This document shows positions 1,711 to 62,123 of a DNA stretch of 64,000 nucleotides, in pieces. The notes beneath the pieces were generated by a model, which saw only the letters and a program-made list of their open reading frames with translations, had not been told where the DNA came from and ran no database searches. This DNA comes from Trichosphaerium sp. ATCC 40318. Lineage: Eukaryota > Protista > Tubulinea. The stretch covers positions 1 through 64,000 of the forward strand of contig JALMLS010000315.1 in NCBI GenBank assembly GCA_038496445.1. The letters are read 5' to 3'. The position numbers were made by a program, and so were the translations under genes. The first letter of the stretch is position 1. The number at the start of each line of letters is the position of its first letter.

Positions 1711-3692
1711 TTAGAAACATTTTCTTTGTACTATATCTGGACCACTGTCTTCATACTCTTCTACGGATACCCTAAACAAGCAGTGGTTAAAATAAATAAA
1801 GTGTACAACGCAACATAATAAAGGTGGTTCGTGAAAAAAAATAAGAAAAAAATGCGAAACTCTCATCTTGACATACCACATTTTTTGAAACGTAGATAAA
1901 GAAGATAATATCATTCCTCCTACCAGAGCAAATATATTCGACTTAGGATTGTACCCTTCGGTTGTAATCTAAAACTGCATTAGCTCCAAAGAAAAAAAAA
2001 ACACAAAAACACACCATTTTACCAGCGGCTTCAACTTCTCTTTCAAGTCGTACTTTCATTCCAGGAACACCAGAAGTAGCTCCTTAAATACCTCAATTAG
2101 ATAATGCATACTACTAATTTGTAGGTAAAAGATATAACGCACCTATTACAAAGTATTTGAAATCGGCTTGATCATCTTTTGGCGGTTGCCCACTTTTTAT
2201 GATTATCTGAAATCTGGTTAATGTACTATGGATTACAGTATACTGTAATATGTACCTCTGCAAACTCTCCGTTTTTAAACAGTACATCAAAACATGCTTG
2301 GAAAGCTCCTTCAGGAACACTTATACTCTTTCCATTTGGTAGAGAAACAGTTGACTTTACACTGTTGTTAACACTTGTTTTTGATTCAGGAGACACAGAA
2401 AACTTGTTTTCAAAGAACCAAGGCTCAAGAGCGAAACGATCTTCTTCAACTATTGCCTAAGAAGTATTAAAATTCATGTAAGTTCATAACCAAAGCTTGT
2501 ACCTTATCTTCTTCATCAAGGAAAGACAGAAACTTATCAAAGATTTGATTTCCTCCAACAGGATAGACAAGCGGTTTTTCTTCCACCCTGAATAAATCCT
2601 TCCTGAGGAAGAGATATCAGCTCCTATGTCTATGATAAACCCGGTTATCTCATCTAAAGAAAAATTAAATAACCAGAAAGGTGTGTCTTGAAGCAGCAAC
2701 CCAAAACACAAAAAGTAAAAAAAGAAAAAGTGTTTGATACACTTCAGTATAAATATAAAACGTACCACAATTCATTAACGACAAACACGATGAATTACCT
2801 ACATACATTGAAAGTGCTTGGAACTCGTCAAACAGGATTTGACATATGCGAGATTTTGCTTCCGCACTGTGTTAAGAATTAGTAAAAAGAAAGAAAACGT
2901 TCAGCACTGAAACAAAAAAAATAACGTACGAAGAGTTATCAGGTAGTGATACCATTATTCCACAATCCACAGTAATAACCCCAAGCTTAATAAACCCTTG
3001 TTTTAATAGATTGATGATAGCATCCCAATCTTCTATCACACCATTCACAACTGGTCTTGACAGTTCAAGTTGTTTTATTCTTGAAAAGAATTAGACTTAA
3101 CAAAAAACAAAGAAACCAATCTAACCTGGGGATTACATCGTCTCCATAGTAAATATTGGATGTCTCAGGGTCCTTACCAACCAGGGAAGGTATTTTAACT
3201 ACTCGTGGACCTTTATCATCGTCAATACCCACTCCAAACCTTTAAAAAAAAACAAACCAGTTAGCAGCAACATTCCAATATTTCCTTTCAAAAAAAAAAA
3301 CTTTACCTCACTTGGTTTGTCCCAATATCTACTGTTACGCGGTTATCTTTTAAATCACACCTAAATTATAATGAATTAGTCTTTATAATAATAGCCTCTA
3401 AACGCTGTACCTCTTAAATACTGTCCATGGTTGATACCTCAAATAGTCAAGCGTTTGAAAGCATTGGTAGAAGTTATCACTAACTTTAACATATTCCTTG
3501 ATACTCAAACTACAATCCAATATAAACTAATAACTCTTATGCAGTTATTTCAAAAACGTACATAGATTGTCTTAATGCATGACAAGTAGCAGCACAAGAA
3601 TGAAGAGAAGTAAGCGAAGAGTACTCCCAAAAATGCTGTAAAATTTCTGGTGCCAGATCTGAAAAAGGACATTGTTCTAGTGCTAATGACAT
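1711..3692 (-). CDS. Divergent actin-related protein with N-terminal F-box-like motif (multi-exon)
   Basis: N-terminus FSDLAPEILQHFWEYSSLTSLHSCAATCHALR. Actin motifs VTVDIG, IPSLVG, PVVNGVIEDWD, TGFIIDIG and the actin C-terminus [34 protein letters not shown]. Confidence 0.85.
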
Positions 3693-3758
3693 ATCATGTG
3701 ACGGTGAAACTAACACGTGTATTAGCATAGTCTTAACATTAATGTTAAAACCTAAAGA

Positions 3759-5044
3759 CTACATTAAACAAAAATTATACTCACTGTCGGCTTCATATCT
3801 CTCAGCTGAAGAATTCTGCACACGAGTCCTTGAACAATAGGCATAAAACCACTTATCTTTTTTTGGTACTGGCTTTATGTTTTTAGGGCCGTTACGGAAT
3901 TGTAAGCTGATTCTTTGAGATGAAAATTTGTCTGGCAGATAATCTGGGTATGTATCCTTGGGTCCAATTGATGAAACACCTAAGTCAAAATTTAACAACA
4001 AAAAAAATAGATATGTCTTCTTTTGCTGTAGTACCATGTGTAATACCACAAGCAGCACTTCCATTGAACACAACAGCATCACCACTTTTTACAGTAAACG
4101 CTTTGAAGAAGTTGTTAGATAGTGCAAGGAAGAAAGGTCAGAATCCACGTGGGAGGATTTTGTATCACTTACAGATTTTCTCACAATCTGGCTCTTTGTA
4201 CCAAAACTCGGCACTGCGACCTAATGAAATAACCATAATCCATCCTCTAGACAAAAGGAAGAAAAGTCAATTATTAAAAAAGAAAACAATCAGAGACTGG
4301 CCAGTAAATTGTGTTTTACAAAAAAACCAAAAAAACATAGTCACAAGCTTGATAGTGTACGTACTGTATAAAGTCTACATGACCGCCAAGCTTACCTTCG
4401 TCGTCATAACTATAGCAAGTAGTACATATAGCGTTATAGTTTTTAGGTATAGCTCCTACAGAGGCATTAATAACGGACGGCGTTTCACTTTTTTTTTTTT
4501 GAATGAAGAGTTTTTTTTTTTGAGATATAAATAGAACCGTTTATTTGAGGCTGAACTGCTTAACGTACTTTCTTGCTGATGCGCTTCCCATGAAATAGGG
4601 CGTATAACGTCTTTAAAGGACTCTGGAATACAGTCTTGTGTAAAATCGCGTACAAATAATTTTTTGTAGTTAGAAGTCTTGTTAGACACTTTCTTCGTTT
4701 TTGGGTAGCTGCTTGCACTGTAAGTGATGCCTTTTAATAAAGTTTTAGCATCTGGTATGCGAACGCTTATTAAAGCTCATATATACAAGTAAATCGTAGC
4801 AACGTACCTTCTAGAAGCGTTTTTTGCATGTCGGGAGTAACCACGCCTTCCAACCGTACAAACTGGTATTTCTTACTCGCACTAGGTGTGTGGTGCGACT
4901 ATTACAGTAATTAGCGTTGCAAGCTACCGTAACGTACATTTCCCATGTGATGTGTTGTAAAGAAAAACTGTTGATCTCTTGAATATTTACTGGCGAAGAA
5001 ATATCAGCGGTCTTGCAAATTGGGGAAGTAGTTTGACCATTCAT
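3759..5044 (-). CDS. AlkB-like 2OG-Fe(II) dioxygenase (multi-exon; 5' end uncertain)
   Basis: Spliced frame gives CYSYDDEGKLGGHVD (HxD), VISLGRSAEF, SGDAVVFNG, THGV and RISLQFR. Confidence 0.75.
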
Positions 5045-7236: not shown

Positions 7237-7510
7237 GATAATAACTCTGTTTCTTTATTGAGAACAAATCAGATAGAAGAAAAAAACTTTTGAAAACCAT
7301 TGACCATGGCCTCTTTCAGCGCTGTTTCTTACGCGCAGCAAGTGATTTAGTTTTATATGCACTGATGTATTATATGTTATCGATACGAAATAGTAAGCTA
7401 ATCTATTCGTCAACTGAGGCTACTGATTCTATTATCTTTGGTTTTTTGCTTTTCTGGCTTTTATTATTGGTACAAGCTATTTAAGCAAACACAAATCGCG
7501 CTCTTTAATT

Positions 7511-8257: not shown

Positions 8258-8893
8258 GTTGTTTAAGCTTTGTAAGTTGTTGTTGTTGATTTATACAAAG
8301 TCAACTGAAGTTTATTCAAACGTCTGTAACGGAGTAAAACACGTATACAGCCAGTACGAGCGCAGCAACTTTTACTTTTTTACATGACGCAATGCTCACA
8401 TCAGATTTCACCGCTAAACTGCCTTCTTTATGAGACTGATATACCTTCCAGGCATCTGAAGATATACCATGAACATGGACGCTGATTTGTTTAACTTGCT
8501 CTGCGATTCTAGTGATTGTTTGGAACTGTTTTTATTTTGACACACTTATCGTTCCCAACGCAACAATTGTTCACCTTCGTGGTTTACCGTTCGCTATCTA
8601 TGTAGCTGCTCAAAAATAAAACAAAAAAAGTACACAGCACTTAACAGTGATAGCAATAATAATCGCTTTCATCGCGGTACTCACGTGTCTCATTGGTGTA
8701 GTGTTAATATCTTACGTTTTTAAGAGACGCACAAACTAGAACCACAAGAAACGGCCTCATAGGGCAAACGCCGTGAGATTTTAGTCAGTTCTATTATGTG
8801 GTACTTTTTAAGAAAGTGTCTTTAAAAAAAACGTGCCAGCGAACTGCACAACCTGCAACCTGAAACAAAATATAAATTTTTTCAACGTTAGCC

Positions 8894-9516
8894 ATGACCG
8901 ATCCTATCACAGGAGCACCGCCTCATTTTTTTGATAGAAGCAATATGTACAAAGACTGGGAACAGTACAGAAAAGAAATGGAGTTATCCTCGAACTCAGT
9001 TTCCAGCAGTTCCTCGGCAACAAAGTTAAAATTAAGAGGGTTTATCAGAACTGTGAGAAACGACCCATTCTCTCGCAAAGAAGATATTGAACACGTGGTT
9101 AGAGAGGTGGAGAGTATGCCACTCAAAACTACATTCTCATATGCTTATGCAGGACTGTACGTTATAATTATTTTGCTTCCAGTATACTACTAAAACTAAC
9201 GAACTATGAAAGGCAAGATAAACCTGAAATACATTTCACAAGTCTTCGTGTCGTAAAGTATGTTAATCCACACAGTGGAAATGTTGTTTGTGACTACTCC
9301 ATGCTCCAATTTTCGTATGAGAAACTAGTTGAACAACCTAAAGTATCATCAACAAGTACAATGATGTCTATTGCACTTGGTGCTGTCGGGTTTGGTGCCA
9401 TTGCTTTTACAGCTGCAGCTCCTTTCTCTATTATCGCTGTCAGTGCCGTTGTTGGTGGTGCAGCTGTAGGTGCAGCTGGTTGCATGTACTCAAATAATAA
9501 AAAAGCACATTTGTAA
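8894..9516 (+). CDS. Glycine-zipper/hydrophobic-hairpin family copy C (intact, 2 exons)
   Basis: MTDPITGAPP..., intron 9157-9212, C-terminus ALGAVGFGAIAFTAAAPFSIIAVSAVVGGAAVGAAG. Confidence 0.8.
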
Positions 9517-10211
9517 ATCGAAAAAACGGCATCTTTACTTCGTTTTAGTTTATCATTCCATGATGTTATTGAATGCATAAAATTGTGGCACCCCAGAAAG
9601 AAAAACACGTGATTATGTACACTGATGTATATGGGTTATCAACACAGTTACGAATAGTAAGTTAATCTGAGGCAACTGATTCTATTATCTTTGGTTTTTT
9701 GCTTTTCTGGCTTTTATTATTGGTACAAGCTATTTAAGCAGCAAACACAAATCGAGTTCTTTAATTTCAGCATACCCTATCTTCAAGATCGTAAACGAAA
9801 TTCCCCAACATGGTTTGCAACTACCTTCTTTAAGAGACTGATATACCTTCCAGCCATCTGACGATTTCCCGTGAACATGGACGCTGATTTGTTTAACTTG
9901 CTCTGTCATTCTAGTGATTGTTTTGAAACTGATTTTGCACATCGTTCCCAACTGTTGTTCACCTTTGGTTGGCGTTCGCTATTCTACGTAACTTGAAAAC
10001 AAAATAAAAACTTACACAGCACTTGCAGTGATGGCACTACGAATAGCTTTCTTGGCTGTACTTCATTAGTGCTAAACGTGTCCCAGCGTACTGCAAAACC
10101 TCCAAACAGCAAATTATAACTATTCACCTAATAAGCTGCTTATTGCGATCATTCTTATTTTAAAAAGGGGTAGACAGCATCAAACAGTTAAAAACAAATA
10201 AAACGTTAGCC

Positions 10212-10818
10212 ATGACCGATCCTATCACAGGAGCCCCACCTCATTTCTTCGATGGAAGCAGTATGTACAAAGACTGGGAACAGTACAGAAAAGAAATGGA
10301 GTTATCCTCGCACTCAAGAGCTAGCAGTGCCTCAGCAACGAAATTAGAATTAGAAGGGTTTATCTCAATTATTAGAAACGACCCATTCTCTCGCAAAGAA
10401 GATATTGAACATGTGGTTAGCGAGGTGGAGAGTATGCCACTCAAAACTACATTCTCATATGCTTATGCAGGACTGTACGTTACAATTATTTTGCTTCAAC
10501 ATTGTTGTACTAACGAATTATGAAAGACAAGGTAAACCGAAACTATATTTCACTAGTATTCGTGTCGTTAAGTATGTTAATCCAAAAAGTGGAGATTACT
10601 CCAAGTTCAGATTTTCGTATGAGAAACGAGTTGAACAACCTAAAGTATCAACATCGAGTACAATGATGTCTATTGCACTTGGTGCTGTCGGGTTTGGTGC
10701 CATTGCTTTTACAGCTGCAGCTCCTTTCTCTATTATCGCTGTCAGTGCCGTTGTTGGTGGTGCAGCTGTAGGTGCAGCTGGTTGCATGTACTCAAATAAT
10801 AAAAAAGCACATTTGTAA
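10212..10818 (+). CDS. Glycine-zipper/hydrophobic-hairpin family copy D (intact, 2 exons)
   Basis: Paralog of copy C with the same intron and a short in-frame deletion (loses NVVC). Confidence 0.8.
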
Positions 10819-17190: not shown

Positions 17191-17216
17191 AAGGTTAGTC
17201 ATAAATTCATATGATA

Positions 17217-26054: not shown

Positions 26055-26288
26055 CCCACAAACTGTTTTACTTCATGTACGTGGCAATTGTAAATTGTTC
26101 AACACGTGTGGTGTAAAACCCGTCTATGCTTCACTGACGAGGCTTCCAAATGACTTGGTGAGCGATGAGCGATGCTTGATGTGCTATTTGGCAAACACAA
26201 CGTACACTTGCTTAAAACAACGCAGAGAAAACCAGAAATTTACAATTTTTTAAACTTCGCTTTGCCAACACGCTTCAGTTTAAAACAA

Positions 26289-30640: not shown

Positions 30641-30713
30641 GCTCTAATAGTACAACGGCAGTATGACAAGTTGGCGGAACTTGCAGATCCGGGTTCGATT
30701 CCCGGTTGGGGCA
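30641..30713 (+). tRNA. tRNA-like Pol III gene with atypical anticodon arm (identity unassignable)
   Basis: Acceptor stem GCTCTAA/TTGGGGC+A, D arm GTAC-AACGGCA-GTAT, T arm CCGGG-TTCGATT-CCCGG, and a T-run terminator at 30719-30723. Confidence 0.8.
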
Positions 30714-38100: not shown

Positions 38101-41100
38101 TGCATCCATCACAGTAATGCAAATGATGTGAACCTCTTTTCCTTTCTACATACAAGTCAGTTATGTCATTTTTGTTTCATGATTTCAACACACGTGATCG
38201 CGTACCTTTACGTCTGACAAATCCTTTGGTACCACATAATTTCTCATAGTACCTCAAGTGATCAATAAAATGAACTTGTTCTGAGATACCAATAGCTGTG
38301 AGAATCTAAAACAGCAAAAAAACAGGGTCAGCTTAGGTTAAAAAAAGACAGTAAATGGCCAAGCTATAGGCCATCTCAGTGTACCTCTTTGCTGTTTTCT
38401 ACAAGAAGCTGCAAACCGAAAAGTGCTGTAACATATTCATTACTGCTAACAGCTCCATCGCGATCATAATCAACAGAAGAAAATTGAGCTTTCAAATGAT
38501 CTATTTCCTTGCTCGACAGATTAAGCTACAATCAATGTAAGGAAAATCCTCAAGTAACCACACCCGTCATTTGTACCTTATTTACAATTCTTAGGTAGTC
38601 TGGTGTATCCTTTTCTGAGAGCAGGTTTGCTATAACGAAAGTAAGAAAGAAATGAGTGCCGCCTTAAAAAAAATGCGTACGAAACATGGGATCGTTAATA
38701 GGGTTGAATAGTTCGCAACCTATTGCCTCTGACATCTCAATGTTAACTAGAGTTTCGCTTACATCAGAAAGCTTTTGTCTCTTCTCATCAGATATTGGGC
38801 GTAGTGCCAACTCGATCAAAGGTGCTAGTACATCTACAAGGAATGAGTTGGTGAACAGGCTTTCGTGTAAAATTTTACGTTGTTGCACATCGTTGTCCAT
38901 ATTGTTCAGAGGTGATTCAAGAAGATATTGAATGACTTTCACGGCTGTTGATTTCAGTTTAGCAAGATCATCTATAGCCCAATCAGGTGTCTTATCAACA
39001 TCAATATCAGTAACCAGCAGTGGTAGTAGACTTGATCGCAGCTCCTAAAATAATAATCAAACCGTGTTATTATCAAATACAGGCATACGCTTAGTGAAGG
39101 AAGATGGGCAATATTGGGCCTTTCTTGATCAAGTAGAGTTATCCCTGCGCCATCAAGTGTATAAGCATAAACGGGAGCAGTAGGAGTTCTCCAGAACTTC
39201 TCCTGTAACTAAGAAAAATCATTAGCCTGGTAACAAAAACAGTTTGACGCACTAGTATTCGATGACATGTTCCAGTATTAGCAGGTAAGCAGTTCATCAC
39301 TTGTCCTGACTTTTCAATTACCGAAACCATGCTACCAACATGCTTAAACTCTGATGTGCGCGCGCCAAGAATATACAATGCCGTATAGATATTGGTCAAG
39401 GTAGCTTCATCAAATACAGCTTTGTCTTCCTTTAAGAAAAATATGAGAAAAAATAGAACACTTTTTAGTTGAAGCAAAAACACGTGCTTTTACTGCTTTT
39501 AGAAATTGTGGCGTTGCACTTAGTGCGGTTATGACAAGTTTCCTAAGGTAGAGTCAGTAGCCCATACAATTCATTAAACAACTCGTACGTCATTGAGTCT
39601 CTCCATTTGTCATACTTAAAGAGAGATCGTAGCGTGTTGATAATGTCTGTAAGATAAGCAGCTCGCTGGTGGTGTTTGTGAAGACGTCCGACAACTAATA
39701 AAATCATATAAGTAACAACTAATTATGATAGTATTTTAAACTCACAAGGAGGTGTAAGCTTCGGCCTCATCCAATCGTGCACATCAAACACAAATGGAGA
39801 ATTACCAAAATTGACTTTGCAAACTCCCTAATAAAGTTAAGAACTATCGTCGTGCTTAAATGGGAGACTTACACCACGGACTGCTATTCCAATAGCAGGG
39901 TATAAAGACCCAAAAACATTATAAAAGGCAATTCCTAAGAATCTCCCGTTCAATGTAAAGGCAATAGTCCCTGATTTAGAATCGTAAAGAAGACCAGCTG
40001 TATCATCTGGAGAAGATTAGTAAATAGCATGATCTGATATTTCTTTGCTCTGAGCTTAATTAAAATACTACGTACTGACGTCTGCCCATGAAGGACCATA
40101 CTTGACTGCTTTATTACCGTCCATTCTATAGTTAAATATATTACCATCATCACCATGGTACCTACTCTCATAAGAATCTTTTAAAGCAAAAAAATATAAA
40201 AAAAACATGACTTACCCGTAACTACCATGACACCAACCAGGCATACCACTCATTTTGATAAGATCCTCAAAAGGATACACACCAAGAGCAATAGCACCTT
40301 TTTCATTACCTTCACCTGGGTCTACTACCGTAACTTCAAAGTAATAAAACCGACCAATACTTGGAATGGCTTGATCCCTAAAAAACACCCCGGTCAATCA
40401 TTTCTTTACAATAAACGTTTATCACTTACGAGTGAACCATTGTTCCTTGATCCTTGAACGACTTGTTTTCTCTATAGTACGTAAGTCCTTCATCACCTAA
40501 ATGACTAGGACCAGTCATATGGAAACTATCAAGTCTTGTAGGTTGATCAACATTATAACTAGCCGTAAGAGAGTACGGAACACTAGACGTAGGTACAGGC
40601 ACTTTGTTGTGCCAAGTCGAAGCACTTGGTGGAAGCGAATCTGGAGCCTAAAAATGAACTAAGAAGAAACTCATTGAAGTACACAAACTATACCTCAGTG
40701 CTACCTGCAATAGCATATAATATTTGTGCGATATTATGAGATTGTCCTTCAAGGACAGTTGATGGATCAACATAAGGAAGTATCATTTGTAATGAAAATA
40801 TAAGGTTGCTTCGTGCAAATATCAGATTTTGTTTGGAGACTAATCTTAATAGAACAGAAACACGTTCAGGCTAAGTTCAAAGTTAGATTTTTCGTTTTTT
40901 GGGCTGTAAATAGCAGTCATGTACTCACCGTTGATAACGCTTTTGCGATATGTTTACCAGCGCAAGACTTGCGTAATATGAGTATGAGAGACTTCATTTG
41001 ATGGTGAGACATTATTGCTTCTTTGTAATCCAACAAAAGAAGTAACTTTGATAATAACACTTCCTGTATTGGATGTGCCTATTCAAAGAAGTTAATTTGT

Positions 41101-44100
41101 ACAATCATGTGACTATACTAATTCTTGTACCTGTTTATAATTACAAAGAAGTTCTAAACACATAATATTAAAGTACTGTGTAGCACTTTGTTGTTTCTTG
41201 ACAGCCTATTTTTGAAAAAAAGTAAGTTGTACAAGTCTACAAAAAACAGTCAGTCGTACTCCATACGAAATCCATCTTGCATAATTCTCATCATTACTGT
41301 TACATACAGGAACTTGTTGAACAATTATCTATATTGTATATTATCAGATCATGTACGAAAACTTAAACAAGAATTTTGAACGTTATAAAATTATACGTAC
41401 ATCATAAACATACTCAACTACACCAGTTTCTAGAAGCATATCAAAGTCTTCCTTAGTGTAAGCTTGTAGTAATGCATACTCAAGTTCATCAGTAACAAAC
41501 GACATATCTTTCTTTTCTATAAAACAGATGTTACACAAAAAACTCTGTGGAAGAAAAAAACGTACTCTTCAAAGCAACCATCAAGGTTTTAAAGAAGGTA
41601 TGATACTTGGCGTGCATGGCTTGACATCTCTCAAGTGATACGCCTTTTACGCCTGGAGGATACTTGTACTTTGTCTTACAAGGGTATACACTACATGCAG
41701 CACGTGAAAACAATTGATTTCCTTGAAGCTTTGAAACAAGGTTTGTTGCGATGTCAAGAGCTTGTAAGTATTGATCATGATTTTTTGACTTCTCAAAGAT
41801 CAGCTCAAGTAACCCATCAACTGATACTCTGCTAAGCATCATCTCTCTAGCACCATTTTTAGATATTGTAGCAAGCAATTAATTTGTCGTTCGTACCTTA
41901 TTGTTGATGCATTGTCTTCGCAAGGGTTTGGTAAAAGTGTTGTTAAAAACTTTGCTTTTAGAATAATATCTTCTGAAAGTTCAGCGTAGATTTGCTTTCT
42001 GTTCTCCTTGAACGTTGTTGATTCTGGATCGTCATCCATCTTTGATGTCTCTTCTTGTGCTGACTGGATAAGATTATTACGTATCTACAACGTGAATGGT
42101 TAGGTGGTGAGCTCAAAGCCTGTAAAAATGGATGATTACCCTACGAACAATACCCCAGAGCCTTGTGAGTTTGTTGAATATTGGATTACCAACATAAGCC
42201 TTAGGGTTGTCTACCACTATCTTAGCTAGTTCCTCGGCGTCTTTATCGTATCCGGAATGAATCAACAATGCAACAATAACCATACGCATGGCCGACGATA
42301 CCTTTTTTTAGGGTTATAAAAAAATATAAAGATTTGTCTTTCGCACTTCCGGAGCGATAGCTCTCCCACCAAGTGTTTGTCGTTCCATAAGATTTGCTAA
42401 TGTCTTAGCCGGTGTATCCTTTTCGGATTCAGAGCTATTCATCATATCTTTCAAGAACTCAGTAAACTAAAAAAAGTAAATGAAAAAAACCATAGCATTT
42501 GATAAGATACTTACAGGATCACCATAACGCCTTATTCCGTTCAGGAATAACTTTGTACGTAAGAATTTCTTCTCTGCTACCCAGAAAAGCTCAGGTTCTT
42601 CAGCAGCATGAGCCATCAAATCCAAAGCGAAATAAACAACAGTAGCAATCTTTCGACAACAAATAAGTTACAAACAACCACAAGAAACAGAAAGTTCAGT
42701 TGTTTAAAAGAGAACTTACCCTTGTACTTGCATCTACAAGCCACACATTGAGGTTAGAAACTAATGGCTTTGGTCTATGACAAGGTATAACACGACAACT
42801 GAAACCCCAACATTTTTCATAGATCTTTTCAGCCTTGAATTGAATCTGAACTGCGTTCACAGGCAGCACAACACGGTTAGGTACATTGCCACTGTACGAA
42901 GCTAACAAATGTTTTTCTTCAATATCAGAGTATAATCTCAAGTGAGCTCCATGTGATAATTCAGTTCGCTTGTCGAACAATAACACAAGATAATCGGCGG
43001 AGTCTAAACAAAATACATTCAGTACCTAAAGGCATGACAAAAGGTAGACATACCATAGCTAAAGAATTGACCATATGCAAGAGACTCTTTATGAGGATGA
43101 GAGCTTGCCATTGTATAAATCTTTTGGCTAAACGGAGGACTTAAAGCCATACGGTGATACTCTAATTCGTCTGGTGTTATACCAAGCCTCTGAAGAAAAA
43201 ATCTATTAGACAACAGATTTGAAGTGAACCCTTTGTGGTGTTGGTACTATACCTTGATGTTAATCTTTGATTCAAGCTTGTCAATCAGAATAGCCATTCT
43301 AAAACAAGGAGGTTAGTTAGAAAGGAAAAAAAAGAAGAAAAAAAAAGGAATTTTTTCTGCCGTACTCTTCAATGGTTGGAAGAAGTGACATACATGCATC
43401 AGTTGGATATTCAACATCAAAACTCGATACTTCATTAAAAGGATAACCTATACTTGATAGTATTGCAGTAACAAGAAGCTTAACATCTTTGCTTTTATCA
43501 GCGATATCTTCATCGCTTTCAAGCTAAAAAATCAAAAATAAGAATAAAACTGTTGCTTCAAAAGATTAAATGGCGTGTACCCATTCTTCTAGGACAGTAC
43601 GACATCTCTTCCATATACTAACAACGATTATTCTATGCGTGTCTTGTATACCATCATTCTTATATCCAGAAGATGCAAGAAGCTAGAAGCACTTGTAAGG
43701 CCACAGTAAGCAAAATTATTGAAAAACTAACTTGATTTTGCAATGCGATTAGGAAATGTGTTGCGCTATTCATAGCAACTTCAGGTGCAGTTTTTGTTGT
43801 TACTGCGACTCTAGTTATATCGTCTATAACAGCCATCTTAAGCTCATCGCCTGCATCTCTTGACAAAAGTTACAAACAAAGGTATCAATAGTAATAAAAA
43901 TCCCAATAGAAAAAGCGTTCAAAAAAACCAACTAGAACGCACTCAGCAATCAATCCAATATGTGTCATCAAATCATGAGGAAGACGAAACTCTATTAGGT
44001 GTTCGAAGAAAGCCTAAAGTCATGTTGTCAATGTTGTACACCGTAGAGTTTTGCCAAAAGTTGTTGGTTGTTGAGCATACGTTCATGTCTATTTTCTTAC

Positions 44101-46812
44101 TAGCCAAGAAGAGGAGTCTATCCATAGGGCTTGGGTATAGCGCAGTAAGAGCAACTACAATGCACCGTAAAGCCTTATCATTAACTTCTTGAGGACTACT
44201 TCCCTCTGAAGTAAAAATAAGCAGCAAGTTGCGAATATCTACAAGAATAGGTACACCTAGAAAAGAGAAGAAAAAAATTAAAACAAGAAGCTTGTAAAAG
44301 ATGATAAGATAAAGCATACTTGAGTTCTCCATATCAAGGCCCTTATCAACCATGAAGTATAGTGTTGTTTTAAGTATATCTAGTAAATAGCATATACCCT
44401 TTGAACTAGACACTGAATCTTTCGAGGCTTTGCTAAGGTGAACTACCAAGTCCTCTAGTAAAGGTATTGATGTGTTAACTATAAATCGAGATGGAAGAGA
44501 TTCTAATTGAGCATCAACAGTAGGTGTTATTGCGCTTGCATTATGTGATAAGAAAGCCAATAAACTAGAAAAAAGGGTTAGTTACAAGTCGAGGATTTTG
44601 GTGAACTTTCTGGCGAAACTAAAAAAAAACCAGAAAAACAACAGTACCCATTCTCTTCACCCTTGAGCGTTCCGACTTTAGATACAGTTTGCTCAGGCAA
44701 ATCAACATAGTGTATATTTGTTTGGTAAGAAATAGTCTTCTCAGCTGGACCCCACGTGTAACTAAAAGACAAACAACAAACTTAGCAATAAAATTCATGG
44801 GAAAAAATCAAGAAAAAAAATCCTTCGTACCAGTATCTTATATTGAACTTACTGTTGAAGCAAACAGTTAAGGCTATTCAATAAAAAAGTACAGTTAGTA
44901 CAAAACCCAATGTAGCAAGAGATTAAGACAAATGAAATCAAATAAAAAAAGAAATTCCTTCTTCGTACCAGAATCGTCATCATGTGACTCTTTGTGCGAA
45001 AATTCACCGGACATTGCGTTATATAAAACACAGTTACTTTGCCATACGAATTCTTGATCATCCTCTTGCTTGTAATACTGTACTACTAATAAATAACCAA
45101 CGCAGTATAACTCATAAAGTCGTTCCATCAAAGCTATCTCAGTCAGTTGTAAAAAAACCCGCTTTTCTTTTTTGTTGCTCACCTTTCTTTTGACATTCAT
45201 ATAGGAATATAGATACTGTTCTCTTATGCTTTAACTTATAAACAGCATCAGTTCCAACAGTGTAAGTTTGTATACAGCTCTCCTCTGGACACAAAACATA
45301 AAGCTCTCTGCCGTCAGAGCAAATCTCGTAATTCTTTGAATCAATGTTACTAAGCTCTACAGTAATACCAGCAACAACCTATACATTGATTCATGAGTAC
45401 TCTTTAATGTGATATTAGAATCTTTAGAGCAGTAACGAACCATGAGGTCATCATTCAATATCCTGAGCTTCTTCTCACCGGCAACTTTGTAGTAAATTAA
45501 ACCTCCCAAAAAAGCCATTGATGTTATATTCTTTGTACACTCCAAAAAAGGACGCTGAAGCACAAGGTTGCATAAAAGGGTATCTTCGAAACCAGTTCCT
45601 ATCTGTTAAATATTGTGATCAGCATAACAAATATAGTAACAAAAACAAAACCATAAAACTTTACCTTCAACAACCCAGCTGTTTCATCTGCAACGTAAAT
45701 GTATTTGTCGCCGCACGTGATACTACAATTCTTATCAGAAGACTCCATATCTATATTTGAAGATCCGTTTGTAGTAGAATCACTTGGTAATGCTATAACC
45801 TTGAAATGACCTTCATAATCGCCCATTCCTATAGCAGGAGAAATAGTAGAAATTGATTTACTCAGTGAAGGTAGAATATCTTCATTAACTAGCTTCTCAA
45901 GTTCAGGAGATGTATCCACAAGGCTAACACATGCTAATGCTCCTCTAACAGACCCTTAAAAAATATGGATTAGTATCACAGTACACCAGAACACAACGGA
46001 CAAAAAGTTACTCCGGAAAACTGCTAAAGTGGAGAACTTTTTTGGTATTCGCAAATTAAGAGTTAGTTTCTGATTTTAAGAGGCATACCAATACCACAAG
46101 ATAGCTCCAATAACATAGTAAACGCTCTATCTTGATACGGCTGTGATTCTTTAGCGTAGACGGGTGAACGTGTAATTGTAATCAAAATATCCAGGATTTG
46201 TTCTACGTCAGGCATTCCGGATGATACTTTCTGCCACCTCTCACGGTTCTGTGTTATATACGCTCCAAGTGTATCAAGCATAAGGCCGCATGTAGAAGGG
46301 TTTCTAGGCAGATTTCCTAACATTATCGAAATAAGCTTATTGTGCTCATAAACGAGCGAAGCAGCGACTTGGTTGTTTAGTTTAGCGTTTGTTATTTCCT
46401 ATTGGTAGCTGTGAGGTTATAAAAAGCGGTTTAAGAAGCGTACTTGTGAAGTTCTGTTTGGTGAATCTGAAGTGTTTAGAAATATGTTCATTAGACGTTC
46501 GTGGGACAGCATTAGTTTCATAACTAGCGTTTCTAAGTGAATATGCCAAACGTTGGAATCTCTGATGCGACGTAAACGTTTTCGTGAGTCTTCTATTGAT
46601 ACATCACATTCCAAGTCCTGTGGGCGTGGTGGATTGCTTATTTTAGTTTTGTCAACATTGTAAAATTCTAGATCCCGCCATGATACCGTAAAATCGCATA
46701 TTTCGTTCAATGACGTGCGTTCAACGCAATGATTAAGATATTCAGGGTTTTCTAATGTCAAAGCCGCTAATGAGCGATGCCATTGCGCTGTATTTACGTT
46801 GGACGTGTTCAT
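32166..46812 (-). CDS. Giant HECT E3 ubiquitin ligase (HECTD4-like): HPY/CUB-like repeats, SPRY, two ZZ fingers, PH-like domain, HECT
   Basis: HECT motifs DVGGPYRE, FEFIGILLG, RFVSGRSRLP, LPQAHTCFF..IEIDTDF; SPRY FYYFEVTV..MPGW..SYGYHGDDG; ZZ CDGC..YDLCESC; many short introns. Confidence 0.92.
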
Positions 46813-46986
46813 ACTGCTAACATGATGCTTTGATATCCATAGGTGTTATATTTGGTGCGTTGACTAAAGTTGTCAGATCAGTCAGATCATAACGCGTCTG
46901 TATCATATATATCGCATACGGCGCTAACGAATGAAATAACGCTGTAGGTAAAATCGCGTATTATTGTAGCAGCCTGACATCACTGC

Positions 46987-52957: not shown

Positions 52958-53090
52958 TGTATGTAAAATAATACAAACAGTAAAAATAAAACTAAATTTA
53001 TGGTTCTTTTTCATTTTGGGATAAAAGGTCAATTTCTCGATTGTGTCTTAAATCTTGTTCTCATGTTTGTGACATCTAACAACAAAGTCT

Positions 53091-53580
53091 TTAATAATTT
53101 GCTTGTTTACCATTGACGAAATTACACTGCTTCCACAATTGGCCATTATAATACCATTGTTTGTATTCTCCATCTTTCTCACCATTTACAAAACTATATT
53201 GGTTACGTAATTGGCACCATCTCAATTCTCCTTCAAGTTTACCATTGATGAAATTACACTGCATCTGCAATTGGCCATTGATAGACCATTGTTTGCATTC
53301 TCCTTCTTTTCTACCTCTTACATAATTACACTGCTCTTCCAATTGTCCATTGTCATACCATTTCTTGCATTCTCCATGTTGTACACCGTGTTTCCAGTAG
53401 GTTTGCTCTGTGAGAATGTTATTGATTCGAAACTGCCATTTTCCATGCTTGTTCATCTCACTATCAAACCTTGTGGTCATTGCCGCCTGTTTCGAAGTAA
53501 GTGGCCAAATTAAATACAAATGAGTCCAAATCGATAATATCAAGTTGAATCTCAATTGGAAGGTTTAATAGGGACGATTT
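53091..53580 (-). pseudogene. Intronless MORN-variant (MORN_2/YwqK-like) repeat gene with F-box-like N-terminus, frameshifted
   Basis: Repeats WYDNGQLEEQCNYVRGRKEGEC. Upstream LLNLPIEIQLDIID lies in another frame and has no in-frame ATG. Confidence 0.7.
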
Positions 53581-55029
53581 TTGTAAGCAGTTCACACTTT
53601 CAAACAATTTCTAGGACACCTCAAAAATGTTATTTATGTCCAATCTTTTAGTATACTTCAGAACACATATGTGTCTATAATATATATTAACCAGAACTTG
53701 CTGGTAATTAATAGTGTGCTTCAATCAACTATTTCATTGAAAATAAAACTGAGTTATTTCTGCTTGGGTTCATATTCTTATCCTCTAGCACCACCATGTT
53801 TTGCAGGTAACTCTTTTACATTATGATGATTAAGGATTACATTCTTTCGTTTAATGCATTTTTTATCACTTTCAGTGTCCCACATAAAGCTATCGTCACC
53901 TGTCTCTAGACCTGATTGTTGTCAATTGGTCGTTCTTTTGAACAATCATTCCAACCCACAAAAACCTTTTTCAAATCATTTCTTTTGGCGGCAGGTGCTC
54001 AATAAATCATGGTGTACGTACGCGCAGTTATAGCGTATTTGATAATTTTGGTATCAAAATACAGAGGTTTCTTTTTTGAAGAAGTTGATGAACATAATAT
54101 TTACATGAAAATGTCAAAAAACTCACTCTTGCTTGGGTACTTTATTGCATCAGATGGCCAAAAAGCTTGATGTAGTTATTTTTTACCACTATAGGAGTTT
54201 TAGAGACAGAACTTAGTTTTTGAATGGAGATACGTTAGGATTTACCAAAAACAGGTTCAAAGAAACTGTGTCACTACACTCCATCAACTATTGCTATAAA
54301 TTACACTGTGTAATACCACACATATTGACTATCACTATGAAAACTGTGGGATGGTCAATTAGCTCTTGAGGTATTTAAATCCAAAAATCGCTTAATGGTC
54401 CATTAGTACAGAATATTGGAATTTATCAATTACACAATGCTCGACAAGCTTAAAACTAATCTCAATACATGACAAATAGCATTAGGCGACACTTCAGTAA
54501 TTTAAACACTTGTCAAAGCTTGTGTAATTGTTAATTTTGGGAACTCGCTTTTTCTTCATTCTTTACGCCACAAACTAACGTTTTCAGCGTTTTCCGTGCG
54601 ATAAACGTCATTTGCAGGTACTTTATAGAAACGCCCTCGTATTTTGGTAGCATATGCTCTGTTTTTGCCAATAACCCGTGAATTACATTCCAAGCACTTT
54701 ATATGGTGACACAATGCTTGAATCATCTGTTTGTGGGCAGTGAAGCTCAGTTGGTGCTTTTTTAGTTAAGTCAAAACAAAAACCACAAACAAACTCGTAA
54801 AATAGTAAATAATTTATTTTACACTTAGATCTTAACAATGGAGCTAGCCATTCTAGGAGTACCTTCACATACGCAAAATCATTAATATGAGAGGTGTGAA
54901 CCGCATACAAAAATCGTCCCTAGATGGCAATCGTCTGATTGCGCATAAAATCTCTACGTATTGGTTGTTAGGTACTTCATCTTGTGATTAAAAAGATTCG
55001 GTGATACCTTGGTTACAATAGATTTGGGA

Positions 55030-55160
55030 CTGGTCAGCATGTTGAATAGAATAAAACAAAATATCTGGCAAACTATGAGTGCTAGCGCAGTCAACCTTGG
55101 TCACTGGGAATAAACAAGTATAAGTTTAGTTTATGTAATGTTTTCTATGTTGCACGTGTT
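55030..55160 (+). repeat. Dispersed ~125-bp element, copy 2
   Basis: Closely matches 31992-32113. Confidence 0.9.
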
Positions 55161-55478
55161 CTGACGAAATTTAGTACCTTCTTTTAGCAATGAAAGGATC
55201 TATATGGTACCTATCGCACAGCGCAAAAAAATGAGATTAATATCCTGTTTTGAATAATATCATTCTCTTTCTGTCTTGAAGTATTCCTTTGTTTTTTACT
55301 TTTGTATAAAGTGTGCAACTTGTCTGCTTTTGCACTTTGAAACTGTAATGTTGGTTTATTTGAACAACAGGGCATTTACATATCAAGTGCTCCCGGGGTA
55401 CTAAGCTATCAAAATTTAATTGCAAACATGGCGTGGAAACCGCTTAGTATTTGTTATATGTCAGGCTGCATTAAGACA

Positions 55479-56342: not shown

Positions 56343-56681
56343 GATGATTGTTGTGTTAATAGAACACTTTTGACTTTTTCGCTGCTTTTTCCTTCGCAAA
56401 AAAGTGGTCTTTGAAAGTCCGTTTCAGTCAAGTTGTAACGACAGGTTTATTTTTTGTTTTTTTTTTTGCTATTCATTTGACATTTTTTTTTGTAGATCTA
56501 CCTACATTTGACAGTCTTTTGGAAGTCTGATCAACCAACAGTTATTTCGTTTATTTTGTTCCTTAAAAGTGCTCTAACGATAAGGTAGGTAAAAAGATTC
56601 TAAAAAGTAACTTGACTAAAAGAAGGCGTTGTACTCAACAAATATAGAAATGTTTAATGATTTGATAGAAGTTGTTTGACT

Positions 56682-58313
56682 CTAAACAATTTTTTTCTTC
56701 CTATAGAACAACAAACATGCTCGGTCTGTAACTAGTTCAGATGCTTCTATTTTAGATACTCTACTATCATCAAAATGATACCACCTGTTATCATCAGAGT
56801 TACGACAAGCAGCTGTGGAGTGCATCTTAGAGTACTACAGGAGATTAAGTAAGTTGCTTTGTAAAGTAATTCTCAGAATAAAATCCGGAGATTTAAACGT
56901 ACTACAATTCCATAGAGCTCATAAACAAAGTTCTCTTCAGGTTGTATTGGTTTTTTAATAAAAGGAGCCATGTCAAGGGTATCAATAGGGAATGTTATGA
57001 CCTTGGATAGAGAACCTTGGTCCCTTCTATTAAAAAATATTACAAATACCTTGAGACTCATTGTTAGCTGGTAGAAACGAAAGGTGGTTTAGGTACCTCA
57101 GGTAATGTCCAAATATCTCGTCCAACCGTCGCACGTACATGGTTTTTACAGTGCCTGCAGTACCTAAGCAAAATAAAAAGTCAAAAAAAAACAAGTACAA
57201 GTTCAATTGAACTTACCATTCGTCACCCTCTATTAATTTAGATTTTTTCGAGAAATCTTTCATGCAATCTTGAAGAGTAGCAGCTTCCATACCAAATATT
57301 TTATATTCGAGCACGACAAACATATCAAACGCTCTTGACATGTTCTTTTAAAAAAATTTAATAAGGGAAACAGGAAAAATATTGCAGTACCCTTACCTTA
57401 CAATCAGGGCAACAAATTTGAGTCCTGGTCTGCCCGTACATTATATCTGTAATATAAGAATCATTGCGAAGAAAAAATGCTCGTCTATAAGCAGCAGCAA
57501 GGTCGACATCATCAGGTATTGACCTACAATTGTTTAGAAAGATAAATAAGAAAAAAACACGTGTCCGTGGTCTAAACACTCACTGGTCTATCTCTGTGTA
57601 AGGTTTGTTGATTATTCTGTTCACATCCTCATGTACCGCATCTACGATAAAGCTTAAGACCTCTTCTGGACACTTGTGATGATATCCAGCCAGCCTCGGA
57701 CAGTGCTTTTCAATCGTCTTCTTGGCCTCTCTAGGCTGTACTGGGTCACGTCCGCTTGACCACAACGCCTAAGGAATCCACTATAAGCTTCTTTGATGCC
57801 GTACATACGGCCTCTCGGGCGTGATGTTGCTTGCAAGACAGCAAAGAAACTGAAGTCTTGATGAATAATCGTACCTTGACAATTTTGGCAAAAGAGTCTG
57901 CAATTTCACCATTGCAACCAAGAGGATTTGATTTATTAATTTGAGCTTTATACGCATCGCTTAAAAAAGGCGCTGCTATTTTAGGGTCACTAACGAGACA
58001 TTGAAAAACGGAATTTAAGCTGCTTGTATTGCCTGAGAACCAAATTGTTAATGAATGACTTTAAACGGTAATTCGAGGTACCCAGATTCATAATACCACG
58101 TAGGCGAGTGCGTTTGGCTTGTATTTCCTTGTCTTGCTTAATCATTGCCTCCCAAGTTTTAGAAACGCTGCAACATGGTAATAAATCCTTATAAGATAGG
58201 CATTGAAGCACTGCTAGAGTTATTTCAATTGGTAAAATTTCGTCTGTGGAGTTATAAGCTTACATATGCCCTAGTTCTACCTGATAGATACCTGTTTCCG
58301 CTGTAGTAGACAT
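56682..58313 (-). CDS. F-box fused to catalytically inactive USP (pseudo-deubiquitinase)
   Basis: F-box ILPIEITLAVLQCLSYKDLLPCCSVSKTW. USP boxes GIMNLGNTSSLNSVFQCL, INKSNPLGCNGEIA, VHEDVNRI, CPDC/CRHC, YELYGIV, WYHFDDSRVS, CLLFY. Confidence 0.88.
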
Positions 58314-58523
58314 TTTTTACGCCTGAGTGCTGTCGAGTATGTTTTTGGGATTGAATTGTCAGTTCATGAGAGTCCGTAGTTCAAAGAACCTTTCAGTTTT
58401 TCTGACAGGGCACAACAAGAACCCTGATTACAAACAACAAAAAAGTTGACACGTGTCATTTCTCAAATAAGTAAGTGACAAAAATAAACGCTATGGCTGT
58501 TTATTGTAACGTGCAAGCTCTCT

Positions 58524-58910
58524 TTCAATACTTGCTCGGTATTAACCATTAAGAGCATTGTTTGAATGTACCTTAGCTATCTTACACAAGTGGTCGCTTG
58601 TCTGTACTGTACACGAGCTCTACGTGACCCTTGTGTAAGGAAGTCACTTCAGTGAAGCGTACTGTCCTTGATGATGATCACGTCATCAAGGCCTTTCACC
58701 TTACGGCCAAGGTGCACTTTGCGGCCTTTGCGGCCCGGGAACATACATGTAACTTGAATAAACTTAATAAAGATAACTTTAACAAGAGTTACAACGTTTA
58801 TTATCTAACAAGTAAAGAAGAACCCTGGTCGGGTACGTACCTCTTTACACCTTGACCCCTTTGTTACGTTTCATATTGAATGACTGGCACTAGTTTTAAT
58901 CTTTGAGCAA
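58524..58910 (+). ncRNA. Candidate structured non-coding RNA
   Basis: Several strong helices whose non-Watson-Crick pairs are G-U on the + strand; no credible ORF. Confidence 0.5.
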
Positions 58911-58988
58911 TACAACTAGAGATTTAAAATTTATGTTTATTTGCCTGCCTTGTTGCTCTTTTTGTTTTACAATTTCATAAGCGACAGA

Positions 58989-59577
58989 TTATCTGTATGC
59001 AGTAATATGAGCACTACCGCTAGAATTGCCTGAAAACGGACAATTGCAGCTGATGAACAGTCTTTTCTCAGGAGTAATTGGTAGCCAAAAATGTTCGCTG
59101 TTAAAGGACCATGCGTTTTGCCTTGGGTAGCATTTACAACCCAACTTGAACGAATATTCCTTGTCTTCATGCTTAGTGTAAACCTTAAATGTTGGGTTAT
59201 TGTCTGTTCCTGCGGTACCAGAAACGAAACGGATGTACACAAGTACTTCCTTGGCATGATCTGGGATGTCTACAAACGATCGTCTTAGAAAGGAAGTTTT
59301 TGTTTCTTAATCACGTGCCTGATATGTCGTATGTCGCAGTAGTCCCATTAGGTATAGCGAAGTCTTTATTGTGTGTTGTCCAAGACGATAGCAAGTTGCG
59401 TTGTTCTAGTTCGTTTAATCTATTCTCTAGCTGCGCAACACGATTCCTTAAGGCCTGTAGCTCTGTTTCTGGCAAGCTTTCTCTAAAGACACTGTTTTCG
59501 TCCATGTAGCCCAGTATTTCTGTTTGAGCTTCGCCTTTATAGATGACTTGCCAGCCTGTTGGTATTTGTGGCTCCAT
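58989..59577 (-). CDS. Hypothetical protein (coiled coil + small beta domain), 2 exons
   Basis: A GC-AG intron (59270-59318) joins the two ORFs in frame: ...YDISDIPDHAKEVLVYIRF...QNAWSFNSEHFWLP. Confidence 0.7.
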
Positions 59578-60049
59578 TAGTATCTAGTAATTATTTTAGA
59601 ATACTTGAGTGTTCCTTTGAGGAACTGCAGTTCCTACAGAAGTTGTTTTGTCGAATATTTTTAACAACTTTGACTTTGACTGTAAATCAAAGGTTCTAAT
59701 GACTAAACAAGCTTCCTATTATTTTATGTACAAGTAACAAAATCTCTACTAGCAAGAGTAAGGCGTTTTTTTTTTCCAATTGAAACTTGACATTTCATGG
59801 AAGGTTCTTCTCAAAAATTAACACAAGAGGTGTCTTCAAAAGCTTTTCATTAAACGTGATGCGTTGCATCAAATAATATATTAATGTGTATGCTTTTACA
59901 TATGCATCATTTACTTTATTTATTTCAAGCACCTAGTGGTATGAATTGAATGACACTATTAGGAATACTATTGAGGACAAATATCTTGATTATTTATTGG
60001 CGCTTTCTAGTTTAGTGGACTGCCCTAGCTATGCATCTTTCTACACTTT

Positions 60050-60741
60050 CTACACTTTGTTTTCGGAAAATTCGGAAAAAACTATATCCCCGTTGACATA
60101 GTTACACTGATGACGTAGTTGGCCATTATTATACCACTCAAGTACCTCTCCATCTAATATACCATTAACAAACGTGCCCTTCTTACGCAGATTGCCATTT
60201 GGGTGCCAATTCTTTAACTCCCCGTCTGGTTGACCATTAATGTAATTACTCTTCTGCGCCAACTGACCGTTGTCATGCCATATTTTACTATCACCTTCAC
60301 ATACGCCTTCAATATAGTGGCGCTCAGACAGTAATTGTCCATTTTCATACCACTCCTTGTACTCTCCATGTAAATGACCATCAACATAACAAATCTCTTT
60401 CCTCAATTGGCCATTGCTGTACCAAGCGTACGCTGTATGTGGCATACCATGTTTCCAATTCGCTTGATATTCAATATACTGCCTTATTGATCTTTTAGTA
60501 GAAGTATGTTTGGCGTTGCAAGCACTGAAATCTCTAAGTCGACGTCATCGCTTTCTTCAATTGTTGAATATTTCAACCACTTTCCGTGGTTTTCAAGCTC
60601 GTCGTCAAACCTTGTTGTCGTTGCTGTGTATTTAGACAATAAAGGCCATTTTACGTACACTTCAACATCTGTATCCATGAGAACGAGATGTAGCTCAAGA
60701 GGTAGGTTTAACAAGCGGCACTGCTCATATTTTTCTGCCAT
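60050..60741 (-). pseudogene. Intronless F-box-like + MORN-variant repeat gene, one frameshift
   Basis: LLNLPLELHLVL..WPLLSK..TTRFDDELENHGKW is homologous to the 53091 copy. The frame shifts between ~60490 and 60545; five WYxNGQL-type repeats follow. Confidence 0.75.
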
Positions 60742-61112
60742 GTTTATTTATTCGCAAATGATTTAAAACAACTAGTATCCTACAACATGCGGCAATGTGT
60801 CGAGAAATATCGACCACTTTTTCCAAAATATAGACCTGCAAAAAAAAAATTTTCAACTTTTTTCAAAAAGAAAAATGTCCCTTTGCAAGTTATTTGAGCA
60901 ATTTGACTTCGTTTGTTTTATTTTGGCTACTACTAGGTTGACGTAATAATAAAAGACTAGGCAGCTGAGAAAAAATGGCGTTTATTCTTGAAAATTAAAA
61001 CTTAGTTGACTGACTTGTCATTATCACGTGGTAAAAGACGTCTTCTAGATCGATCATTTATAATGGTCAGACCACTGTTGACCGCATTTGTTGCAAGTAC
61101 ATTAACTTGATT

Positions 61113-62123
61113 TCAGTTGGGTACAGCCTTTGCCACCTTAGGTTTCTTCGCATCTGATCTTTCCAACTCATCATTTACATCTTGCTCTGTTTGTCGTTTC
61201 CTCTTAGATCCATGAACCAACAACAACTTTCTCCTTTCTACCCACTCATCTTCCCAATCCTGTGGAGGAACACTATATGCTGTCGCTGCCAAGTGCTCAA
61301 ATATAACGAAAAGCAACTCAGGTGGTAAGCTCGAAAAGAAATTGTCACCGTGGCGATCAGCATTAGCTATCATCAAGATTGTAAAAACACGTAATCTAAA
61401 TCCAAGCGGAAAATAGCAATGTATAGCTTTTTTCCATCTAGGCACCAACAGCTGGCCCTGGTCATAAGCAGTTGTACCGTCACTAGAGGCTTCAATACCT
61501 CTAAGCCATTTTTCATCAGTCATCGTAACCTTGTATGTCGCATTAACCACCTCAACGTTGTCCCAGCTTAAGTCAGGGTTATCAGCTCTTAATCTACCCA
61601 TTTCTCTTTCATTAACACCTGACTTGCTTATCCTCTCCACGTGATGTATATACCGATAAGTGTGCTGTTTTAAATCATAGCAAATATTATCAACGCTTAT
61701 ATTATAAGAAATAGGAGGGTAGTTGTTTTGTTTAGCAAAAACAATCCAACGTCTTTGTTCATCTCTTTTTTCTTCAGCTACTTTTTCCAAATAGCGTGCC
61801 TTAACTTCTTCTGAAGCATTTGCCCATTCTTCGAATATTTGAGATGAGTCCATATCCGGTGTTTTATCCTTTAAATCAGCCGCGAAGTCGCTTATATCTT
61901 CGCCGTTTGTCTTGAAAGAGCCGTACTTGCGTACAGGTTTTTTAACGCCCGTCCTGTACGCTACCTTGAATGGCAGTGTATCCCAGAGTATCATTAAAGC
62001 GATTTCGTAAAGATCATCCGGTAATTCGACAGAAGAAGCGAATGTCGGTTCAAGCCAAAGGTAGAAGGTTCTACCGTTGATGTTAGACACTCTGTACCTA
62101 TAGACATCACTAGAACCGCCCAT
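61113..62123 (-). CDS. Intronless protein with HMG-box-like segment and C-terminal F-box-like motif
   Basis: DLKDKTPDM..EEWANASEEVKARYLEKVAEEK (HMG helices 2-3 like); W...IHCYFPLGFRLRVFTILM...FSSLPPELLFVIFEHLA; NLS-like KKPK. Confidence 0.7.
   Translation of the reverse strand: MGGSSDVYRYRVSNINGRTFYLWLEPTFASSVELPDDLYEIALMILWDTLPFKVAYRTGVKKPVRKYGSFKTNGEDISDFAADLKDKTPDMDSSQIFEEWANASEEVKARYLEKVAEEKRDEQRRWIVFAKQNNYPPISYNISVDNICYDLKQHTYRYIHHVERISKSGVNEREMGRLRADNPDLSWDNVEVVNATYKVTMTDEKWLRGIEASSDGTTAYDQGQLLVPRWKKAIHCYFPLGFRLRVFTILMIANADRHGDNFFSSLPPELLFVIFEHLAATAYSVPPQDWEDEWVERRKLLLVHGSKRKRQTEQDVNDELERSDAKKPKVAKAVPN

Follow-up and report, generated by a model that had tools for sequence, protein, structure and literature searches.

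Five F-box-like motifs in a 64-kb stretch of Trichosphaerium DNA appear to mark independent genes, one of which joins an F-box to a ubiquitin-specific protease core with serine at the catalytic cysteine position

A stretch of 64,000 nt from Trichosphaerium sp. ATCC 40318 (contig JALMLS010000315.1 of assembly GCA_038496445.1, positions 1 to 64,000; the whole stretch is referred to as the window below) contains five short F-box-like motifs, which are attached to an actin-like protein, a ubiquitin-specific protease (USP), two MORN-variant repeat proteins and an HMG-like protein. An initial annotation had grouped the five as one system, a lineage-specific and rapidly changing set of substrate receptors for Skp1-Cul1-F-box (SCF) ubiquitin ligases in which the partner domains imitate host proteins. 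The locus thus raises the question of how many of these motifs are F-boxes and whether the genes that carry them belong together. The explanation that we favor, with a probability of roughly 60%, is that there are five independent genes and not one system: an F-box-USP gene whose product would act as a receptor, a probable F-box-actin gene, two members of a MORN repeat family and an orphan gene whose motif is most likely a chance or remnant match.

All five motif strings were found, at positions 3656, 53562, 58235, 60705 and 61328, and all lie on the minus strand. The partner domains also turned out to be real, as USP, actin-like, two MORN-variant repeat arrays and an HMG-like box were recovered by Pfam and PDB matches and an AlphaFold2 (AF2) model. 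However, in a six-frame translation of the window the pattern L[PA]xE[IL] was seen 8 times as opposed to 6.1 times expected from 30 first-order Markov simulations, in which up to 11 matches occurred. Since this count is no higher than chance, each motif requires extended F-box evidence, and the five candidates were examined one by one. The curated Pfam cut-offs were 24.3 bits for F-box-like (PF12937), 20.5 bits for F-box (PF00646), 29.6 bits for MORN_2 (PF07661) and 25.4 bits for HMG_box (PF00505); scores for the USP and actin-like genes are given per exon. The protein libraries lack this lineage, including the products of this genome itself, and all negative homologue searches reported here are therefore weak. 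Judged by profile and sequence comparison, one of the five F-boxes can be considered certain and one probable, and three are unsupported.

The certain case belongs to the F-box-USP gene (56682..58313, minus strand), which has nine coding exons and a product of 382 amino acids. Its structure was given by a spliced transcript contig of 1220 nt from run X2, one of two transcript runs (X1 and X2) that were compared with positions 56500-62400 of the window (5,901 letters). Exons 1-5 are located at 58313-58292, 58243-58082, 58032-57875, 57768-57584 and 57523-57397, and exons 6-9 at 57344-57217, 57163-57097, 57049-56903 and 56834-56682. The eight introns between them are all of the GT..AG type and about 47-106 nt long; after their removal the gene forms one open frame of 382 codons with an in-frame stop preceding the ATG. 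The F-box is encoded within exon 2 (58131..58238, minus strand), and its full-length matches to F-box-like (36.1 bits) and F-box (32.3 bits) both lie above the cut-offs, making it the only one among the five candidates to exceed a Pfam threshold. No relative of this exon was identified by a HMMER search of the whole library of 1.84 billion representatives, nor by a metagenome scan. A single library match, P0034, was rejected, as it repeats a small, unrelated F-box protein six times head to tail. This entry of the public library, with 902 amino acids in six exact copies of about 150 amino acids each, evidently arose as an artefact of assembly.

Downstream of the F-box, the Pfam family UCH (PF00443) matched collinearly over exons 3, 4, 8 and 9 with a sum of 77.7 bits, and USP4 and USP15 were the best PDB sequence matches for the exons bearing the Cys box and the His box. 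In the alignment to the USP4/USP15 chains, the sequence NTSSLNS takes the place of NTCFMNS, by which the nucleophilic cysteine is replaced by a serine. The corresponding codon AGC (58022..58024, minus strand) is one change away from TGC, and over exon 3, including this codon, the X2 transcript does not differ from the window. This serine agrees with the earlier designation of the gene as a dead USP. The catalytic histidine of the His box is kept (56820..56822, minus strand; HSTA aligned with HYTA of USP15, with a UCH score of 30 bits on this exon), as are the aspartate in FDDS and both CxxC pairs of the zinc ribbon (CPDC and CRHC). The first histidine of the His box is lost, and the loop preceding the catalytic histidine, read by eye at the junction of exons 8 and 9, falls about 6 residues short of that in USP4/15. 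The Cys box itself is interrupted by the intron at 58033-58081, and the junction between F-box and USP is therefore situated within exon 2 rather than at a boundary between exons. In comparison to the X1 and X2 transcripts, both of the two differences within the gene were synonymous, which is a hint of purifying selection. The results demonstrate that the USP gene is intact, spliced and expressed, and that it carries a canonical N-terminal F-box and a USP core with a Cys-to-Ser exchange. No earlier report of an F-box-USP fusion was found in the literature.

With respect to function, the F-box would be expected to dock on Skp1-Cul1, and the USP fold, predicted to be unable to cleave and still able to hold ubiquitin, may serve as the substrate-binding module. 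F-box-USP would then bring ubiquitin, or proteins that are already ubiquitylated, to the SCF ligase; residual serine-based activity, a role as a decoy for effectors or a role as a scaffold are conceivable alternatives. Cyclin F offers a parallel to such a receptor, as its F-box is likewise combined with an altered conserved domain, a non-activating cyclin box, although its fold differs from that of the USP partner. USP39/Sad1 and PAN2/USP52 similarly retained the USP fold for binding or as a scaffold after loss of the catalytic cysteine; unlike these, F-box-USP has retained histidine and aspartate and has exchanged cysteine specifically for serine. To our knowledge, neither USP39/Sad1 nor PAN2/USP52 possesses an F-box. 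By sequence the USP4/USP11/USP15 cores match the Cys-box and His-box exons best, but F-box-USP has a serine as nucleophile and lacks the DUSP and UBL domains and the insert within the core.

The second candidate, the F-box-actin-like gene (1714..3692, minus strand), was modeled by eye as 11 exons from GT..AG sites and reading frames (exons 1-6 at 3692-3562, 3360-3307, 3239-3126, 3079-2930, 2866-2766 and 2653-2503; exons 7-11 at 2456-2256, 2206-2143, 2082-2015, 1968-1878 and about 1771-1714). Its first exon matched F-box-like below the cut-off (16.6 bits, E 0.007, profile positions 6-33 of 47). In the language-model atlas, every neighbor of this exon that has a Pfam family was an F-box or F-box-like protein, with scores of 0.86-0.87. 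Taken together, the region at 3564..3692 (minus strand) probably encodes an F-box. The following exons matched the Pfam family Actin (PF00022) collinearly at profile positions 56-86, 107-138 and 373-394 (E 0.004, 0.26 and 6e-6), each below the cut-off, and in an exon-wise PDB search, for which most exons are too short to score, one of them weakly matched Arp2. The strongest Actin match (E 6e-6) falls on the C-terminal 50 or so residues, and strong divergence is seen in the N-terminal and middle parts. DIGTN and DIGAD, located by eye, presumably stand in place of the actin phosphate loops DNGSG and DSGDG. Within exon 6, the assembly contains a frameshift at 2575..2590 (minus strand), a site with GGG and AAAAA runs: the frame changes between ..IYSG and ..PLVYPVGG, and without the shift the next exon meets a stop. 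The gene may be freshly broken, but at such runs an assembly error is possible.

An N-terminal F-box followed by a diverged actin-family domain is also the arrangement of ARP8/SUSA2 of Arabidopsis. Unlike SUSA2, the window gene has its strongest Actin match in the C-terminal 50 or so residues and is frameshifted in the assembly. Because this C-terminus, as judged by eye, looks close to conventional actin, the sequence suggests that the F-box-actin combinations of the window and of plants have an independent origin. ARP8/SUSA2 binds to ASK1, a homologue of Skp1, and is required for autoimmunity via paired nucleotide-binding receptors with leucine-rich repeats (NLRs), and the pairing of an F-box with actin has been stated to be restricted to plants (PMC7562919).

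The two MORN genes, MORN#1 (53091..53610) and MORN#2 (60050..60741), are both encoded on the minus strand and matched MORN_2, a repeat of 22-23 residues, with E 5e-29 (MORN#2) and 2.6e-15 (MORN#1); the two scores of 97.3 and 55.1 bits both lie above the cut-off. MORN#2 is composed of two exons (60741-60544 and 60463-60050) that encode 203 amino acids with five MORN_2 repeats. The GT..AG intron of 80 nt between them (60543-60464, minus strand) was placed by homology with MORN#1 and with P0022, a eukaryotic transcript product from MMETSP that is the nearest relative of the window MORN genes. In MORN#1 the first open piece lacks an ATG, one repeat is shortened, and the N-terminal module is frameshifted at about 53517-53523 in the assembly. 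Together with the shift in actin-like exon 6, this frameshift accounts for what the initial annotation had described as two decaying genes, a description that holds for the assembly, with the position of the actin-like site at GGG/AAAAA runs to be kept in mind.

The motif of the MORN genes is part of an N-terminal module (60544..60741 in MORN#2, minus strand; LL.LP.E..L...D.D..Y..WPLLSK...T.RFD), about 45 residues of which are common to MORN#1, MORN#2 and P0022 (alignment A1). When the more distant protein P0001 is included, only the LPxE(I/L) core remains in common. None of the members yielded a Pfam F-box match in this module; MORN#1 produced a faint match to PRANC (E 0.09). A profile of A1 retrieved no F-box chain among PDB sequences, the A1 hidden Markov model (HMM) placed the true F-box of the window at noise rank (E 5.4), and alignment of the module to an F-box alignment (A2) by hhalign covered 14 columns at a probability of 3%. 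The AF2 model of the module reached a predicted local distance difference test (pLDDT) value of 59.5, which is unusable for fold comparison. Its atlas neighbors belonged to the F-box clan, with scores of 0.81 or less. The module is therefore conserved and resembles F-boxes in its LPxE(I/L) core only, and an F-box identity is not supported; we would put the odds that it binds Skp1 at about even.

A search restricted to the N-terminal region of P0022 returned only P0022 itself, a metagenome scan with P0022 gave matches to the MORN part only, and a viral scan found no close relative. At 60119-60439, run X2 contains many contigs that are 90-95% alike to an island of MORN#2 and diverge on both sides, and in one of them position 60367 is joined to 60119 by 39 other letters, leaving about three repeat units fewer. 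The X2 contigs are best understood as transcripts of paralogues in which MORN units are shuffled or vary. This indicates that the two genes are members of a multi-copy MORN_2 family that is large, expressed and expanded in this lineage, with varying repeat number.

Relatives of the MORN_2 part were also found on giant-virus-sized contigs of IMG/VR. On one of these, a contig of 1.47 Mb (L005, positions 2115-4686, plus strand), three MORN_2 genes are arranged in tandem. The N-termini of two of these genes are nearly the same (MESLSDDILFYNI..SKR.N.LSK, of the LSDDIL..SKRF type) and received no Pfam F-box call. The MORN, ankyrin-PRANC and FNIP families of giant viruses and poxviruses (PMC5753266) resemble the window MORN genes, as a short LPxE-type module precedes a repeat array and the genes occur in multiple copies. 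In contrast to the viral families, the window MORN genes are cellular, and a spliceosomal intron is present in one of them. No F-box model is reached by the MORN N-termini of either the viruses or the amoeba. An insert of a giant virus at 53-62 kb was considered and is ruled out by the spliceosomal introns of the genes located there.

The remaining motif, LPPELLFVIFEHL (61290..61328, minus strand), lies near the C-terminus of an orphan single-exon open reading frame (ORF; 61113..62123, minus strand) that spans 386 stop-free codons and encodes 336 amino acids from the first ATG. Neither a homologue in the library search nor a lead in the atlas was obtained for this ORF, a negative to which the absence of the lineage leaves little weight. 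An HMG-box-like region at 61743..61907 (minus strand) was recognized by Pfam HMG_box below the cut-off (E 0.012, 16.5 bits) and by the AF2 model, in which, calculated from the single sequence, only residues 73-127 were confident (pLDDT about 64-86). These residues align to the HMG boxes of SSRP1, HMGB1, Abf2p and BAF57 with Z scores of 4.1-5.0 and a root-mean-square deviation of 2.0 over 54 residues. At LPPELLFVIFEHL, only the first F-box helix is represented (positions 1-18 of 47 in F-box-like, E 0.04) in a region with a pLDDT around 30, and a stricter F-box pattern matched there was seen once compared to 0.43 times expected. Most likely, LPPELLFVIFEHL is a chance or remnant match, and an F-box is unsupported. 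Compared to X1, the ORF exhibited two synonymous and two conservative differences, a pattern that suits a real gene, although the counts are small.

The genes are embedded in intron-rich eukaryotic DNA with a GC content of 0.35-0.40, few long ORFs and one tRNA, and their neighbors are ordinary, with genes for PRP3, a GTPase of the EF-Tu type and an MFS transporter as well as genes with a SET domain or with ZZ fingers. Several of the surrounding features were noted in passing. The tRNA gene (30641-30713, plus strand) encodes tRNA-Arg with the anticodon GCG, which is unusual in eukaryotic nuclear genomes. Three paralogous genes at 345-958 (minus strand), 8876-9513 and 10164-10815 (both plus strand) share the start MTDP.TGAP..FF and a Gly/Ala-rich hydrophobic end, and the piece tested had no Pfam match. 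An exon at 25701-26072 (minus strand) encodes a Zn(2)-Cys(6) binuclear cluster domain of the fungal type (E 3e-10), here in a probable amoebozoan. In a very large multi-exon gene (34400-46850, minus strand), one or more ZZ fingers are accompanied by repeated modules that end in ..CWGF.F/..EWGFRF. Finally, a small two-exon gene at 58942-59652 (minus strand) with a GC..AG intron (59270-59318) had comparatively good transcript coverage and identical splicing in X1 and X2. Its product has a coiled-coil-like N-terminal half and matched no Pfam family, and five of its six differences from X1 were synonymous.

For the Trichosphaerium genome as a whole, a GC content of 37.69%, a mean intron length of 75 bp and a mean exon length of 154 bp have been published, values to which the GC content of the window and the intron lengths of the USP gene conform; F-box and MORN are the commonest domains among the putative viral transfers, and their abundance was interpreted as giant-virus gene exchange (PMC10521059). 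Table S3 of that study mentions 'F-box' at least 139 times. The local density of motifs in the window thus reflects a genome-wide abundance of F-box and MORN domains that is already on record.

Other explanations for the genes as a group or for single members have to be weighed against five independent genes with an F-box-USP receptor. The initial annotation proposed a set of high-turnover SCF receptors with partner domains that imitate host targets, by analogy to the integrated decoys of plant NLRs; pathogen effectors grabbing the mimics would then be ubiquitylated and destroyed. Two partners are indeed altered copies of conserved host proteins, frameshifts are present in two genes, no orthologues were found, and SUSA2, the F-box-actin protein of plants, acts together with paired NLRs (PMC7562919). 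However, demonstrable F-boxes are present in only one or two of the five genes, the USP gene looks conserved and not fast-evolving, with two of two differences synonymous and the zinc ribbon and the partners of the triad kept, and the absence of orthologues is uninformative, as the lineage is missing from the libraries. Three of the five motifs failed the HMM, profile and structure tests, a check that had been set beforehand as one by which the proposal could be refuted. What stood of the proposed receptor fusions to host-protein mimics are the altered USP and the diverged actin, but not the other three; a lineage-specific repertoire finds some support in the missing orthologues, with the same caveat regarding the libraries, and in the multi-copy MORN genes. 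A single system is contradicted by the genes themselves, which are unrelated except for the two MORN paralogues and are located among housekeeping genes. The likeness to plant NLRs is limited to a built-in copy of a pathogen target, as no NLR is involved here, and that to the F-box families of nematodes and plants, which have expanded and evolve fast, to the idea of a diversified receptor family; both are analogies only. We consider the decoy function highly improbable, and give an equally slender chance to the more general version that the amoeba builds many SCF adaptors from an F-box and its own inactivated proteins as bait for effectors of intracellular bacteria or giant viruses. If it were true, a ubiquitin ligase would take the place of the NLR in the logic of integrated decoys.

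It is unlikely, too, that the MORN genes and the F-box abundance stem from giant-virus gene exchange and that their function mirrors viral manipulation of the host instead of host defence. The prominence of F-box and MORN among the putative viral transfers (PMC10521059), the MORN_2 relatives on giant-virus-sized contigs and the tandem genes on the 1.47-Mb contig, which combine an LSDDIL..SKRF N-terminus with MORN_2 repeats, would fit such an origin. But the nearest relative, P0022, is eukaryotic and itself retrieved no close relative among viruses, MORN#2 is interrupted by a spliceosomal intron, 'alien index' calls from best hits are weak for repeat proteins, and the USP and actin genes are not covered by this explanation. 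Quite unlikely is an account in which nothing functional links the five, and chance motifs fell on genes without relation to each other, of which several are pseudogenes in decay. The chance frequency of the motif, the frameshifted state of the actin-like gene and of MORN#1 and the lack of relatives of the orphan ORF would be in line with this, in contrast to the USP gene, which is expressed with eight correctly spliced introns and a full-length F-box, to the first actin-like exon, which scores as an F-box by two methods, and to the LPxE core conserved across diverged MORN members. For the USP gene alone, the protein might still be an active isopeptidase with a Ser-His-Asp triad that is tethered to SCF, e.g., by trimming chains or by shielding the adaptor from auto-ubiquitylation. 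The kept histidine, aspartate and zinc ribbon point in this direction, and USP53/54, long listed as pseudoenzymes, are reported to be active (bioRxiv 10.1101/2024.07.07.602376). On the other hand, the usual means of inactivating a USP is a Cys-to-Ser exchange, and both the first histidine of the His box and part of the loop before the catalytic histidine are lost, by which we regard an active enzyme as very unlikely.

Several points weigh against five independent genes with an F-box-USP receptor as well. Ubiquitin binding by the serine variant is a prediction from the general behavior of Cys-to-Ser mutants of USPs, and the shortened loop before the catalytic histidine could also harm binding of the ubiquitin tail. 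In the actin-like gene, the join of F-box and actin depends on one intron of 201 nt that was placed by hand. Conversely, an LPxE core that is present in four diverged MORN members, including P0001 at 26% identity, hints that the MORN module may be underrated as an F-box candidate.

With regard to F-box annotation, the window illustrates that a five-residue LPxE motif alone is not an F-box. The dense 'F-box' calls in this genome, including those of the F-box/MORN family, need support by profiles or Skp1 binding before they are read as a repertoire or as immunity. If the F-box-actin gene is of independent origin, the occurrence of this combination outside of plants would qualify the statement that it is specific to plants, and a second case would bear on what the actin module of SUSA2 recognizes. 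F-box-USP, if it acts as a receptor, would represent a new way of building receptors for ubiquitin ligases, in which a natural trap for ubiquitin is connected to SCF.

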